Assembly (NCBI RefSeq): GCF_006345805.1 | Contig: NW_021829848.1 | Span: forward strand, 1 to 5,827 | DNA length: 5,827 nucleotides | Source of the DNA: Octopus sinensis | Taxonomy: Eukaryota | Direction: 5' to 3' | In this document: piece by piece, positions 325 through 5,414 of the stretch | How the letters are laid out: every line of letters begins with the position of its first letter | Numbering within the stretch: position 1 is the stretch's first letter | Program-made: the position numbers and the translations under genes | The notes under the pieces: generated by a model | Told to the model about the DNA's origin: nothing | Database searches by the model: none | What the model saw: the letters and a program-made list of their open reading frames with translations, nothing else

Positions 325-575
325 GTTATTGTCTGTGCAATGCCGTGTTTGACAGCAAAATGGATACAAAAGAAATTGAGAAATGTTGGGCCAGAGAAAT
401 GAAGGGATTGCAGAAGAGAAAACTTGGTACAATACCTAAAATGCTACCTAGAAAACCTGCAGAAAAGTACTATCCCGCATTCTGCGAGAATCTTAAAGAA
501 TATTCTTGAGGTGTGAGGAGATCTGTTGTCATCAAACCTCAATATAATGTACTTTACCTATTAAAGCATGTAATA
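325..575 (+). mobile_element. 5'-truncated, decayed R4/Dong-like RLE LINE 3' end (copy 1)
   Basis: Broken translation AMP.DSKMDTKEIEK ... AREMKGL ... LGTIPKML ... QKST ... SARILKNILEV* (stop 514-516). Aligns to the 3' end of copy 2 (SVRILRKILEI*, stop 3930-3932) and shares the 3'UTR blocks caaacctcaa (533-542 / 3949-3958) and gcatgta (566-572 / 3985-3991). Left boundary approximate. Confidence 0.8.
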
Positions 576-593
576 ACTTAATAATAATAATGA
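571..593 (+). repeat. Imperfect (TAA)n tract between LINE copy 1 and SINE 1
   Basis: taataacttaataataataatga. Confidence 0.85.
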
Positions 594-837: not shown

Positions 838-1040
838 GCTTTCTACTCCGAGTAGAAGGCCTGAAAGTTTATGTGGAGTGGCCAGTCGATTACATTGAAC
901 CCAGTACTTAATACATCGACCTCGAAATGATGAAAGGTGAAGTCGACTTCAGCGGAATTCGAATTCAGAGCGTAAAGACGGACGAAATACTGCCAAGCAT
1001 TTTGTCCGGCGTGCTAACGATTCTGCCAGTTCGCCGCCTA
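838..1040 (-). mobile_element. tRNA-derived SINE copy 2, near full length
   Basis: Minus strand aggcggcgaactggcagaatcgttagc (A box) ... ctgaattcgaattccgctg (B-box-like) ... ctttcatcatttcgaggtcgat (central block) ... ggccttctactcggagtagaaagc, then (ATT)9. Confidence 0.9.
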
Positions 1041-1048
1041 AAATAAAA

Positions 1049-1066
1049 TAGTAGTAGTAGTAGTAG
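1049..1066 (+). repeat. (TAG)6, left flank of the inverted LINE segment
   Basis: tagtagtagtagtagtag read directly. Confidence 0.95.
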
Positions 1067-2280
1067 TGTCTACAATTGCTGACCCCCCCCACCTTAGCTT
1101 TCTTTGTACTTCTGTATCAACACTGTCTGTCCTTTTGTCATCTATGTTACTGTTCCATTTACACACTAGGCAAAAAAAAAAAAAAAAAAATGTACATTCC
1201 TTTGTATACTTGAAAGTTTTTAGAGCCAGAAACCTTGGACACCACAGGGCCTGGAGAGTGGGGTTGCTTTCCGTTTGGTATTTTCTCGAGCACCTCTTTT
1301 ACTTTCATATCCGTGATTATTATATTTTTCTTGTCGCTCCATCTTCTCTTTTAAATCCCCGCAACCAGCCCGGCTTTTATATTACCTTGAACCTCTTTGC
1401 TGCTTCAGTATCTGACATATTGTTACTCTGGTTCAGTTGTTTATAGCATTTTCTTTCGATGTTATTGAGTCTATTCTGCTGGTATTGCTTTGTTCTCTGT
1501 TAGTATCCAGGTTTTTTTTTTTCATTTCATTTTTTTTTTACTTGATATGGTTTAAATTTTTTTTATTTTTGGACGACCTGCAGTCCTTTATGTTTGACGT
1601 ACTTTCTTTGTAGTTCGTCCCTGTGCCTTTCGCTTACTCTCTTCTTTTCTATGATTGCAAATATCCGTCCAAGATCTCCCTTGAGCTGTTCAATTTGGTT
1701 CTCATGCCTTTGGTCCTGCTACGGGATTTTGTCCTTTGTTTTTCGTACGTCTTTTAACCCCAAGAATTTAGGTGTCGTTTAGATCTGTTACATTTTGCAC
1801 CACTTCGTTTTCCACTTTTGATTCCTCTCAGAACAGGTAGCCTCTTTCTCTCGTTATTTCGTGTCTCTTTCAGGCGTTATAGTAAGTTCCTTTCTTATTC
1901 TGTAACAATTTTTCCTTCCACGAAATAAAATCTGCCTTCGTCTGGGTAGCTGTTTCTTCTGTGAAGATTTATTGGTTGCTCTACCAATCCCTGATATTGT
2001 TCTGCTTCATTTCCTTCGTATTCAGCGTAGTCATGTTCACACTCTTTCACTATTGTGGAGATCTCCTTCAGTTCCAATCGGAATAACCACTATCTCATCA
2101 CGATTAGATTTTTCTAGTCTTTTGTTGTACATGATTTTAGTAGGCTCTTTTCTTTAATAACATTCCATTGCAGTTTTGTTGTCGTTTTGCGTCGATTTTC
2201 TCCTAATCTTAGTAGTATTTGGATAACGACCAGGCCCACCCTGCTGTACAGTGGAACACTTACCGTGCAAAAGACATTCA
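1067..2280 (-). pseudogene. Disrupted N-terminal/pre-RT coding region of the RLE LINE polyprotein
   Basis: Same motifs as above. The supplied ORF 1895..2077(-) (ELKEISTIVKE...) is one surviving piece. Confidence 0.8.
1172..1190 (+). repeat. A19 homopolymer (T19 in element sense) interrupting the LINE coding region
   Basis: Lies between the KNF and MTKGQTVLIQK motifs on the minus strand. Confidence 0.9.
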
Positions 2281-2497
2281 CACGGAACACGAAGAAGACT
2301 GTAGAGATGAAGTGTCACAACCACCAGTGTTTTATCGAGACACCGCCTCTAGGGGGTTGTCAGCCAAGTCTAAAGAGACCCACCTCCCTCTGTGATAGAT
2401 TTATCTACATGAAAACTTTCGCTGCCGTTTTTATTCTCGAGGCATTCTTTAATACTACTGCTATCCTAAGTGGTAACAATGGCGTCATCATCAGCAG

Positions 2498-2970
2498 TTA
2501 ATAAAGAGATGGGAAGTCAGTAATTATAGAACTATTATGTTTATCTAATTGGCCTCACAGTAGATGAAATATGGAATTTTCTGGAAAAGGAGAACTTACT
2601 GCCAGCGGAGCAAAAAAGATGCAGAAAGAAGTGGAGGGGAACCGTTGATCAGCGTTTTCCAGGGAGACTCACTCACTCCGCTGCTCTTCGGCATTGCGTT
2701 AATCCCTCTGATAAGTATACAGAGAAAATCCATCGCCCGCTTTATATGGATGACCTCAGACTATATAAAAAGAAATGAGATAGCCCTAGACTCTTTGATC
2801 CAAACAGTGAGAGTATTCAGTACAGATATTGAAATGGAGCTTGGAATAAATAAATGCGTAGTAATGATCATGCCCGAAGGTAAACCCTGATGGCAAAAGT
2901 TACCACAGCAGAACATGATTAGATTGCTGTAAAATAATGAGGGATACAAATACCTTGGAGTGCTGTAAGG
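2498..2970 (+). pseudogene. Reverse transcriptase domain, frameshifted and internally deleted
   Basis: QGDSL.P and YMDD motifs are present in different frames, followed by YKYLG. The supplied ORF 2564..2890 is a mosaic of these frames. Confidence 0.92.
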
Positions 2971-3375
2971 ATAATGGAAGGAGATATGAGAGAAAATCTC
3001 TAAAGAGTTTACGAGAAGAATTACGAAGCTGCTAGAAACGAAATTAGACGAAGAAAGGTGGCAGGGAATTACGATATTGGGGTTGAAACATTATGGTGTA
3101 CGGAGTGAAGAAAGAATACTACTGATAGCTAGAGATGTCTAAAATGTAACTGAAACAGTAGGAGAATTGAAGAATAGAGCAAGCAGGTGGAAAGAAAAGG
3201 AATTGTATCACTGATTGATGCCACCAACGGAAGATGTTATAAGTGAAGAACGCTGGCTCTGACTAACCAACCGAAATCTGAAATGAGAGACCACAGCGCT
3301 AATCGTAGCTCCTCAGGAACAAACTATTAGGACGAATCTGATAGAAGCAAAGAATGACAAAACTTAGACATCAAA

Positions 3376-3691
3376 GGTAGAATTTGCAGGAAAGGGGACG
3401 AATTATCAGTCATCTCTTCAATGTGTGCAGTAAGCTAGTATAAAAACAGTTTAAGCGCAGGCATAACTAAGTAGATATATATAAAAACAAGTGCATTGGG
3501 ATATTAACCGAGTATGTGACTTCAAAGCAACAGTAAAGCGGTGAGAACACGAACTAGAGGCTGTGACAGAGAATAGATTACTGGATCTTATGGGATTTCC
3601 CCATAAAGACCAGACATGATTATAGAGAACAAACTAGTGTGAGATCATAGATTTTGCAAATCCCTGTTATAACAGTCGATACCATAGAAAC

Positions 3692-3746
<55 letters not shown>

Positions 3747-3932
3747 AGGATCTAACCAGAGTTGAAAGGACTGTAGAAGACTGAAACAGCAATTATTCCT
3801 GTGGAAATGGCACGTTTGGCACGGCACCCAAAATGCTACGTAAAAGTTATTGGACATGAGATTCGTGTTGTTCACCGCGAAAGTACCATCCTGTGTTCTG
3901 TAAGAATCCTAAGGAAAATTCTAGAGATTTGA
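3376..3932 (+). pseudogene. CCHC zinc knuckle and PD-(D/E)xK restriction-like endonuclease, decayed
   Basis: (G for C)RICRKGDE-ISHLFNVCSKL (3376-3437); KRRHN (3453-3467); VHWDI; ILWDFPIKT (3585-3611); PDMIIENK; CEIIDFANP (from 3638); QDL (3746-3754). This order is typical of R2/R4-type RLE elements. Confidence 0.85.
3695..3744 (+). repeat. (GA)25 microsatellite inside the RLE coding region
   Basis: Perfect run counted directly. Confidence 0.97.
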
Positions 3933-4016
3933 AGAAATTTGTGGTCAACAAACCTCAAGACAACTTTCCTGTTGATTAAAATTTGCATGTATTAGGTTGA
4001 TGATGAGGATAATAAT

Positions 4017-4196
4017 CTTTTCTACTCTAGGTACAAGGCCTGATATTTTGGGGGAAGGGAGTTTGTGGTTTATATCGATTTTTAGTACTCAACTGGTAAA
4101 TTTTATATTCGCAGAATTTGAACTCAGAGCACAAAGACGGACGAAATGCCACTAAACATTTTGTCCGGCATGCTAACGATTCTGCTAGCACACTGC
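4017..4196 (-). mobile_element. tRNA-derived SINE copy 3 with central deletion
   Basis: Plus strand cttttctactctaggtacaaggcc ... cagaatttgaactcagagc (intact B box gagttcaaattc on minus) ... ctaacgattctgctagc. It lacks the ~35-40 nt gaaaggatgaaagg..tcgac block present in copies 1 and 2. Confidence 0.88.
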
Positions 4197-4237
4197 AATA
4201 ATAGTGATGATGATGATGATAATAATACTAATAATAA
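4197..4237 (+). repeat. Compound (GAT)n/(AAT)n spacer between SINE 3 and SINE 4
   Basis: aataatagtgatgatgatgatgataataatactaataataa. Confidence 0.9.
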
Positions 4238-4240
4238 CCA

Positions 4241-4365
4241 GTCTTCTTATATGCACAAGGCCGGAAAGTAAGAAAGGCAAAGTCCTCTTTGACAGAATTT
4301 GAACTCAGAACTTATAAAGGCTGGAAGAAATCGTTTGTCTAGCGCAGAAACGATTCTAATATTAG
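4241..4365 (-). mobile_element. Degenerate SINE copy 4 with large internal deletion
   Basis: gcacaaggccggaaa joined directly to gaaaggcaaagtc, then cagaatttgaactcagaac (B box on minus) and aacgattct. Confidence 0.75.
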
Positions 4366-4379
4366 CCCAAACCTTCCGG

Positions 4380-4470
4380 TTTTTGAAGAGTGATCACACG
4401 ATTAAATTTCTCAGTATACAACTGGTATCATACCATATCAACTCATGAAGACTTAATTGACCTCGGCGTC
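4380..4470 (-). mobile_element. Highly degenerate SINE fragment 5 (central part only)
   Basis: ctcagtatacaactggta resembles SINE 3 ttagtactcaactggta; tatcaactc resembles tatcgactc; aattgacctcggcg resembles agtcgacttcagcgg of SINE 2. Confidence 0.55.
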
Positions 4471-4559
4471 GTTTTCAAGAATCATACTTCTTTATTTATC
4501 GCGGGAGGAAATAAAACAAGAATACGCTTGTCATCGTTACGAACCTGGGATTTAATAAC

Positions 4560-4670
4560 AGCAACGTTGAGCAACAAGAAAGCCCCTACACGGCCATTCG
4601 ACCACCAGGAGATAACAGCTAAATTTATCTCAATTCATTTCCCTATAGTTCCTTCCCTTAAAGTTTTTCA
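4560..4670 (+). repeat. Possible degenerate copy of another interspersed octopus repeat
   Basis: ggccattcgacc...gagataacagctaaatttatctcaattca resembles a recalled octopus repeat (gaaatagcagccaaatctccctcaaatca). From memory only; no second copy in this window. Confidence 0.3.
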
Positions 4671-4773
4671 TATACAATGTCTAGCAAAAATTAAATAAAG
4701 ATGGTCGCGGGTGAATATATTTTTTGATCCGAATTTTTTATCAAGTCGCAATTGATCTGGACAGAAACAGTGG

Positions 4774-4795
4774 CAACAACAACGACAACAACAAA
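4774..4795 (+). repeat. Short imperfect (CAA)n
   Basis: caacaacaacgacaacaacaaa. Confidence 0.8.
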
Positions 4796-5287
4796 TAAGA
4801 TGGGGAGAAAATTAACTACAGTAACCGTTGATCCACCGCAGTTGTTGATCGAAGGACTGATAGCTGGCTTGTCCAGTCACTCAATCACTCATTCACACGT
4901 AGACTAAATGATCAAAGCTCTCACACACCACACAAAAACAGCTGGAAAGCAAAACGAAAGTGTTGACAGAAAGTTGTTGGCAGTAAAGATATCGTTGATA
5001 GTTTTTTTTTTTAAAAAGCCGTTAGAGGTTTTTAGTTTGTTTTATTTGATTTTATTTTTTCTTCATTCTTGTAATCTAACAACTGTGACATTTATTTGAT
5101 ATTTGCTTCATACAGTTCCTCCTTGGCTCCTCTCTTGGTCTTCCTCTCTATCTTGATTTAATTATCTTCAACCCATACATTTTCCTTTTTTCTATCTTCT
5201 TTAATACGTCCATAGGTGATTGCGCATGTTTCTTACTCACTTCCACTCCCCCCTTCTCAGTGAGTACACTCACGGACGCACGTGTTA

Positions 5288-5414
5288 ATGTGTGTGTGTG
5301 TGTGTATGAGCGCGCACACAGAAATATGTGTGTGTTTGTGTGTAAATGATTTTATATTCATCATATATATATGTACGTATATATGCACACACATACACAC
5401 GAATGTGTGTATGT
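5288..5414. repeat. Compound (TG)/(TA)/(CA) microsatellite tract
   Basis: Read directly. Confidence 0.9.

Follow-up and report, generated by a model that had tools for sequence, protein, structure and literature searches.

The DNA analyzed here is a 5,827-nt stretch of the Octopus sinensis genome (contig NW_021829848.1), called the window below. Coordinates are those of the window, and strands are given relative to its plus strand. The region between 1049 and 4016 is a dead long interspersed nuclear element (LINE) that is split into two oppositely oriented arms and lies inside eukaryotic repeat-rich DNA. Along the plus strand, the target repeat is followed by the reverse complement of the element, running from a point just after the codons for SNYR (b) to a point in the 5' untranslated region (5'UTR; a), and then by the element in direct orientation from the codons for LI.K (c) to the tail. 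In the coordinates of the element itself, a<c<=b, with b at the outer end and a at the inner junction.

The anatomy of the two arms was established by comparison with intact relatives. A 108-residue reverse transcriptase (RT) piece of the window was searched against 1.84 billion representatives, and full-length matches were then used as yardsticks. The closest intact relative fetched, the 1118-residue open reading frame (ORF) of metagenome locus L003, served as the reference for the arm alignments. In a frameshift-aware protein-to-DNA alignment, the inverted arm (minus strand, from 2316 down to 1069) matched residues 8-467 of this ORF with 45% identity over 376 aligned codons, with 11 stops and 8 frameshift steps over 413 codons. 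The direct arm (plus strand, up to 3929) matched the remaining protein to residue 1118 with 52% identity over 450 aligned codons, with 13 stops and 17 frameshift steps over 473 codons. The inverted and direct arms cover residues 8-467 and ~455-1118, respectively, of one and the same protein. With P0046, tblastn placed residues ~375-463 on the minus strand at 1378-1109 and residue 487 onward on the plus strand from 2545, and the identical split was obtained with 10, and later with about 110, full-length relatives. The direct arm lacks about 240 nt (residues ~520-594 of the relatives), with the gap at 2650-2654. A word-index protein search with the 108-residue piece returned one fragment only, P0151. 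Pfam gave nothing useful for ten stop-free pieces of the window, which are too short and too decayed.

The two arms share only the stretch from LI.K to SNYR. The core of this duplication is a 15-mer, present as GTCAGCAATTGTAGA on the minus strand (1083-1069) and as GTCAGTAATTATAGA on the plus strand (2516-2530), with 13 of the 15 positions identical. These were the sole two matches to the 15-mer in the window at two or fewer mismatches, as opposed to 0.03 expected from 200 shuffles. The direct arm reads (Q)QLIKRWEVSNYR from 2492/2498, and the inverted arm reads TKGQTVLIQK...VSNCR. The length of the duplication was 33-39 nt in the plus arm (2492/2498-2530) versus 52-58 nt in the minus arm (1069-1120/1126); about five codons were lost from the plus-arm copy.

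The density of in-frame stops was equal in the two arms (11/413 inverted and 13/473 direct codons, 2.7% each). Both arms scored best with the L003-like group, and their scores were correlated across 111 relatives (rho 0.33, p=4e-4); the best-scoring relatives of the two arms differed, and the test is a weak one. Equal decay and a shared nearest group are compatible with a single event, in which both arms would derive from one RNA.

The RT of the relatives to which the window arms align matched RVT_1 at E values of 1e-23 to 1e-33. The best solved homologues of these relatives were R2 proteins, ahead of L1, and a profile of 8 full-length relatives aligned to the R2 protein 9nl3_A through CCHC, (K/R)PD, D, and K (E 1.9e-57). 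Exo_endo_phos, which would mark an apurinic/apyrimidinic-type endonuclease (APE), gave no match in the 5 full-length relatives scanned, and the 5' arm of the window aligns to their non-APE N-terminus. The endonuclease region has left remnants in the window, namely CRKGDE..H..CSKL, ILWDFPIKT, and an EREREK stretch turned into (AG)n. Since the profile alignment to R2 runs through both the CCHC motif and the endonuclease, the element is assigned to the LINEs with a restriction-like endonuclease (RLE), and by architecture and target it is classified as Dong-like. Dong of Bombyx mori, a member of the R4 clade, inserts into TAA repeats (Xiong & Eickbush 1993; PMC3774820). Among the relatives, (AAT)n precedes the element in L001, L002, L003, L004, L006, L046, L083, and L084, and it also follows the element where the 3' end was read (L001, L003, and L083). 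Dong-like copies of several families (L083, L085, L086, and L073) form same-strand head-to-tail arrays of 3-9 copies per 10-23 kb, as would be expected if copies inserted repeatedly into one another's (TAA)n tails.

The insertion site of the composite is of the same type. To the left of (TAG)6 stand a SINE-like repeat (resembling a short interspersed nuclear element) and then AAAATAAAA, and another SINE-like repeat follows the tail, (TGA)3GGA(TAA)2T, on the right. Both flanks, (TAG)6 and (TGA)3GGA(TAA)2, are TAA-type on the plus strand, and when joined they resemble the microsatellites between SINE-like repeats at 801-838 and 4196-4240. The composite thus has the appearance of a single insert within a single microsatellite. 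A second LINE copy in the window, which ends in (TAA)4, occupies the same kind of site (Table 1).

A reading made from the sequence alone had placed the 5' half on the minus strand from ~2497 to SN(Y/C)R at 1083-1069 and the start of the plus half at ~2498 with LIK..EVSNYR. It had described an overlap of only a few tens of nucleotides around that motif, with 13/15 identity, and had named an RLE LINE of the Dong kind with a TAA-type target. The coordinates and strings of the minus half were borne out, with the 467 N-terminal residues encoded there, and both the L003 alignment and the tblastn split agree on the plus half. The overlap proved to be 33-58 nt, with only 0.03 matches to its core expected by chance, and the R2 profile alignment, the (AAT)n flanks, and the published target of Dong (PMC3774820) support the family and its target. 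The half-inverted arrangement is confirmed as real in its anatomy, family, target type, duplication, and equal decay of the arms.

Table 1. Features of the half-inverted LINE and its surroundings in the 5,827-nt window
Feature	Position	Strand	Evidence or remark
Second LINE copy, independent and strongly 5'-truncated: residues ~1038-1118, 3'UTR, (TAA)n tail	345-592	+	Followed by a SINE-like repeat
SINE-like repeat of ~210 bp, immediately left of target microsatellite	839-1040		Repeat families found within window
(TAG)6 microsatellite, left flank of composite	1049-1067	+	TRF: period 3, 6.3 copies, 100% matches
Single G between repeat and 15-mer	1068	-	C of the Pro codon after NYR in all relatives; probably element-derived
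Inverted 5' arm, coding: N-terminal region and RT motif 0 to SNCR (1083-1069)	1069-2316	-	Alignment to L003 ORF
Duplicate copy 1, in inverted arm	1069-1126	-
A19 run (T19 on element sense strand), grown within inverted arm	1172-1190	+	TRF
Conserved 5'UTR block	2310-2402	-	nhmmer E=1e-15; blastn 77-83% identity to L001, L003, L014, L083, L084
Innermost 95 nt of inverted arm, uncertain origin	2403-2497	-	No alignment
Duplicate copy 2, start of direct arm	2492-2530	+	Inner junction somewhere in about 2492-2503
Direct 3' arm, coding: RT motifs 1 and 4-7, thumb/linker, CCHC, RLE remnants	2498-3932	+	L003 alignment
ACTATTA, proposed internal priming site on RNA	2531-2537	+	1 of 3 A[CT]TA[CT]TA sites in 2.8 kb of element
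(AG)25 microsatellite, an outgrowth of the EKEKE codons in the endonuclease region	3694-3744	+	TRF and L003 alignment
Stop codon TGA of direct arm	3930-3932	+
3'UTR	3933-3997	+	Aligns to 3'UTRs of second LINE copy (77%), L001, and L083/L084 (83%)
3' tail / right part of target microsatellite, TGATGATGAGGATAATAAT = (TGA)3 GGA (TAA)2 T	3998-4016	+

At the outer junction, the target repeat and the element at b can pair over 6-7 nt with one G:U. Of the three motif sites listed for the element, one falls exactly at the junction, and the chance of finding such a motif there is roughly 0.1-1%, depending on the offset allowed. The codon after NYR was compared between the window and its relatives: L001 reads AGACCT, L083 reads AGACCA and CGGCCC, and the minus arm of the window reads AGAC/ACTACT. 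The perfect (TAG)6 repeat lies inside surroundings that are about 13-25% diverged, and the 15-mer copies differ at 2/15 sites.

Our best explanation, which we consider an even proposition, is that the composite arose in one retrotransposition of a (TAA)n-specific Dong-like RLE LINE, with twin priming, or something closely equivalent, as its resolution. A bottom-strand nick would have primed on the (UGA/UAA)n tail of the RNA, and the resulting first cDNA, extending from the 3' end back to about LI.K, would be the direct arm at 2498-3997. The top strand would have been nicked before this cDNA was done, and its 3' end (...TAGTAG) would have annealed to (C/A)CUAUUA just past the SNYR codons. From there it would have primed a second cDNA toward the 5' end of the RNA, giving the inverted arm at 1068-~2497, and the 3' ends of the two cDNAs would have been joined at about 2492-2503. 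Later decay would account for the in-frame stops (2.7%), for several deletions, and for the growth of three simple repeats. The order of the nicks and the priming step are the parts of this sequence of events that we infer from the product.

Several features of the locus match this scheme: b, the outer inverted end, is adjacent to c, the start of the direct arm; the duplication is small; the tail is normal; and the whole occupies one microsatellite. A cut-and-paste inversion would leave no duplication, so the shared stretch of 33-58 nt argues for twin priming. Furthermore, because the relatives insert into (AAT)n, a top-strand 3' end made of TAR repeats is what the second nick would be expected to provide. 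Ordinary target-primed reverse transcription does not produce a 3'-truncated copy on the minus strand, and the chance that two independent truncation points fall within about 55 nt of each other is about 3% (estimated as 110/3300).

The segment next to the inner junction is less informative. Compared with the upstream 5'UTR of the relatives, 2403-2497 gave p=0.11-0.26 in local alignment and p=0.045-0.2 in anchored alignment, which is weak, and nhmmer reached the conserved block at 2402-2310 only. The segment does contain a landmark, CCTCGAGA at 2442-2435, with the same spacing as CCCCGAGAC in the relatives. It is either decayed or partly deleted upstream 5'UTR, or filler or flank. With so weak an alignment, arguments from this innermost segment favor neither twin priming nor its alternatives. 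The part at 2443-2497 was initially favored as 5' flank or transcribed leader carried inward, on the basis of L001, where (AAT)n adjoins CCCCGAGAC. This was undercut by the longer 5'UTR of L083 and L084 (ENA assemblies) and L014, in which the full region extends 128 nt upstream of CCCCGAGAC and starts with GTCCTGGGTATGAC right after (AAT)n. Two further candidates were rejected as not significant: a copy of the element 3' end acquired at 2443-2497 by template jump (p=0.27-0.57), and a direct arm reaching upstream to the P.W motif at 2465.

A number of points weigh against twin priming. G1068 intervenes between the repeat and the 15-mer, which weakens the microhomology. The A at 2531 probably arose later, because all relatives have a Pro codon (CCN) there and the minus arm keeps the C; the RNA then probably read CCUAUUA, and the match would be 6 nt with a one-base offset. 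The sequence-only reading had TAGTAGT (1061-1067) pairing fully with ACUAUUA (2531-2537). Both positions are correct and the pairing holds in the present sequence, but the reading ignored G1068 and relied on an A that is probably secondary. The perfection of (TAG)6 amid diverged surroundings indicates that the tract has been remodeled since the insertion and is still evolving, and a target site duplication is unreadable in a microsatellite. If 2403-2497 is flank, it is explained more simply by a later inversion. Nor did the relatives supply a second example. Among 81 related loci, none had matches on both strands as a 5'-inverted copy would, and the 14 longer loci, with about 34 copies in all, included no copy in which the coordinates of an inverted 5' part abutted. 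Inversions of this kind are uncommon in the lineage, with a rough upper bound of 8% from the longer loci alone; the loci of this census represent other families in other hosts, and metagenome assemblies favor intact, consensus-like copies. A snap-back-like pair in L086 (4080-4913 minus, 5376-6808 plus) had no DNA-level inverted repeat and was set aside as unrelated insertions. Published work adds two considerations on the same side: 5' inversion seems to be particular to L1 and its host (PMC4245944), and in R2, second-strand cleavage is thought to come after first-strand synthesis (PMC11371274). Finally, a single old, decayed copy cannot separate twin priming from a later inversion with a staggered break. 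Of the earlier proposal of twin priming at a nicked (TAA/TAG)n target, the layout stands, being exactly that of twin priming, but one decayed copy does not establish the mechanism.

A later micro-inversion in DNA would have yielded exactly the same final sequence, had a normal, near full-length plus-strand insert been turned around by one break at its 5' end and another, staggered, around SNYR. The stagger would have measured about 40-55 nt, with fill-in leaving the inverted duplication, and the outer break would have lain at or just outside the element's 5' end. Neither alignment nor nhmmer found 5'UTR sequence to the left of 1068, so the outer break of such an inversion must be at or beyond that end. 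The 95 nt at 2403-2497 could then include original 5' flank brought inward, and the lack of any other twin-primed copy among the relatives is in keeping with this account. The microhomology does not separate the two explanations, since the inverted TAGTAGT/TAATAGT pair could serve DNA end joining equally well. What makes the micro-inversion unlikely in our judgment is that it requires two breaks 1.4 kb apart, one of them within about 100 nt of the 5' boundary of the element, and also a staggered break for the duplication; for a particular LINE copy, such an event has a low prior relative to a one-step mechanism linked to integration. Inversions through staggered breaks in Drosophila leave both ends of the inverted segment with one copy of a short sequence, the two copies being oppositely oriented. 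Such duplications usually occur at both breakpoints and are unrelated to transposon boundaries, unlike the window inversion, one end of which coincides with the insertion boundary.

Two accounts that dispense with inversion altogether appear distinctly improbable, each about equally so. The arms could stem from separate events, a 5'-truncated plus-strand copy having landed beside an unrelated minus-strand copy of the same lineage that was later stripped of its 3' two-thirds. Elements of this kind do pile up in (TAA)n tracts, and the window itself holds the second truncated copy at 345-592. Opposite-strand fragments occur occasionally in the arrays of the relatives (2 of about 11, at 4080-4913 and 18008-18379 of L086), and the two arms differ in the relatives that match them best. 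However, the point at which one copy breaks off on its 3' side would have to coincide, within about 55 nt of 3.3 kb, with the point at which the other begins on its 5' side, the copies lying head to head, and target-primed copies truncate at the 5' end, not the 3' end. A minus-strand insertion would also break the orientation rule of the lineage, as every microsatellite in the window is of TAA type when read on the plus strand, and the equal stop density of the arms does not suggest two histories. Alternatively, the assembly could be chimeric, with two different genomic copies joined either at (TAG)n (about 1049-1068) or close to 2497. The repeat-rich window spans no more than 5.8 kb, and microsatellites are classic points of misjoining. 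Yet the (TAG)6 tract is only 19 nt long, no exact match between the arms is long enough for a join to start from (the 15-mer differs at 2 sites), the flanks on both sides fit a single SINE-microsatellite-SINE site, and the abutting coordinates of b and c would have to arise by chance.

Twin priming is best known from human L1, for which the layout a<c<=b with b outermost is given in the summary of PMC2912911 (after Ostertag & Kazazian 2001). Like twin-primed human L1 copies, the composite has an inverted 5' segment and a direct 3' segment, b adjacent to c, a small duplication, a normal 3' tail at the target, and a possible microhomology between the upstream target end and an internal site on the RNA. 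Unlike L1, the window element has a C-terminal RLE rather than an APE, and its target is a (TAA)n-type microsatellite rather than TTTT/A. Its duplication is also fairly long (33-58 nt), and it is a single case as opposed to many in L1. In cell assays, 5' inversion was observed only with human L1 in human cells, apart from one Nimb-2_DR insert (PMC4245944), in agreement with the statement of the sequence-only reading that twin priming is described mainly for APE-type L1. A paper on R2 integration treats twin priming only as an L1 phenomenon, possibly related to second-strand synthesis (PMC6895275), and full-text searches of the literature turned up no account of an RLE LINE undergoing twin priming.

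The nearest comparison within the RLE LINEs is the snap-back product of R2 (PRINT, PMC11371274). It too involves an RLE-type LINE with antisense element sequence beside the upstream target. In the snap-back products found in human cells, the cDNA folds back on itself, and the antisense part thus duplicates sequence that the sense part contains as well (PMC11371274), whereas the inverted part of the window element is the upstream half and is absent from the direct arm save for a few tens of nucleotides. The layout is that of twin priming and not of R2 snap-back. With the Dong/R4 clade, the element shares a single ORF in which RT is followed by CCHC and a PD-(D/E)xK endonuclease, as well as insertion into TAA repeats, and its relatives are flanked by (AAT)n and occur in head-to-tail arrays. 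An HDV-like (hepatitis delta virus-like) self-cleaving 5' ribozyme has been shown for Dong and R4 (PMC3774820). Here, in contrast to Dong, no such ribozyme was detected by Rfam in the 5'UTR of the window, L001, or L084; the conserved, partly covarying 5'UTR block could not be fitted to the HDV fold, and the window copy is dead and rearranged.

The general claim, that RLE LINEs can undergo true twin priming in which, for a (TAA)n-specific Dong-like element, a (TAR)n top-strand end exposed by the second nick anneals to an internal CUAUUA-like motif and primes before the first cDNA is done, we advance tentatively, at slightly under even probability. One fossil copy is a lead, not a demonstration. 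If the claim were true, a known mechanism would be extended to a different class of endonuclease. The upstream target end could then prime on the RNA in RLE LINEs, which bears on the order of nicks and on the formation of 5' junctions, and second-strand nicking could precede the completion of first-strand synthesis. Inversion points would be predicted to cluster at internal (UUA)-like motifs. The question is also relevant to R2-based gene insertion tools, for which inverted products are unwanted.

The 5'UTR of the relatives has conserved features of its own. A block of ~90 nt, CTCTTTAG.CTTGG.TG...CTAGAG...TGTCTCGATAAAA, is 77-83% conserved between elements whose proteins are about 45-55% identical. 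It was located at 8349-8440 in L001, ~120-215 in L003, ~280-375 in L014, 9134-9215 in L083, and 3286-3365 in L084. The block contains a few compensatory pairs (e.g., AGAGGGA/TCCTTCT versus AGGAGGG/CCCTCCT) and matched no Rfam family; it may be a functional RNA of the Dong-like LINE lineage. The upstream 5'UTR that starts with GTCCTGGGTATGAC lies at 8951-9073 in L083, ~3098-3225 in L084, and ~105-232 in L014. Its GTCCTGG and a downstream CCAGGTC could pair as a first helix, judging by eye only.

Individual loci of the relatives showed further irregularities. At 8200-8310 of L001, an 11-nt piece of the element's own 5' landmark (CCCCGAGATCA) stands within (AAT)n and is followed by more (AAT)n and then by the element; a 5' junction that was aborted or template-jumped may have left it behind. 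At 3700-3739 of L003, past the (AAT)n tail, the contig runs into the start of the same ORF, which means either a tandem in head-to-tail order or collapse of a repeat by the assembler. A tRNA-like start right after the microsatellite was noted by eye in L006 (1-100) and L008 (100-200), with the box B-like sequences GGTTCAATTCC and GTTCGAACCCGG, and was unconfirmed by ARAGORN and Rfam.

The SINE-like repeats of the window have additional copies at ~593-800, ~4017-4195, and ~4245-4360. The four copies are 62-85% alike and are separated by TAA-type microsatellites, and both LINE 3' ends in the window adjoin a SINE-like repeat. ARAGORN and Rfam found no tRNA in these repeats. By eye, their minus strand is tRNA-like at one end, which would mean a (TTA)n tail, opposite in sense to the (TAA)n of the LINE. 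CA/TG-rich low-complexity tracts at 85-155 and 5282-5357 are 74-85% mutually complementary over 39-58 nt, probably a mere reflection of shared simple sequence.

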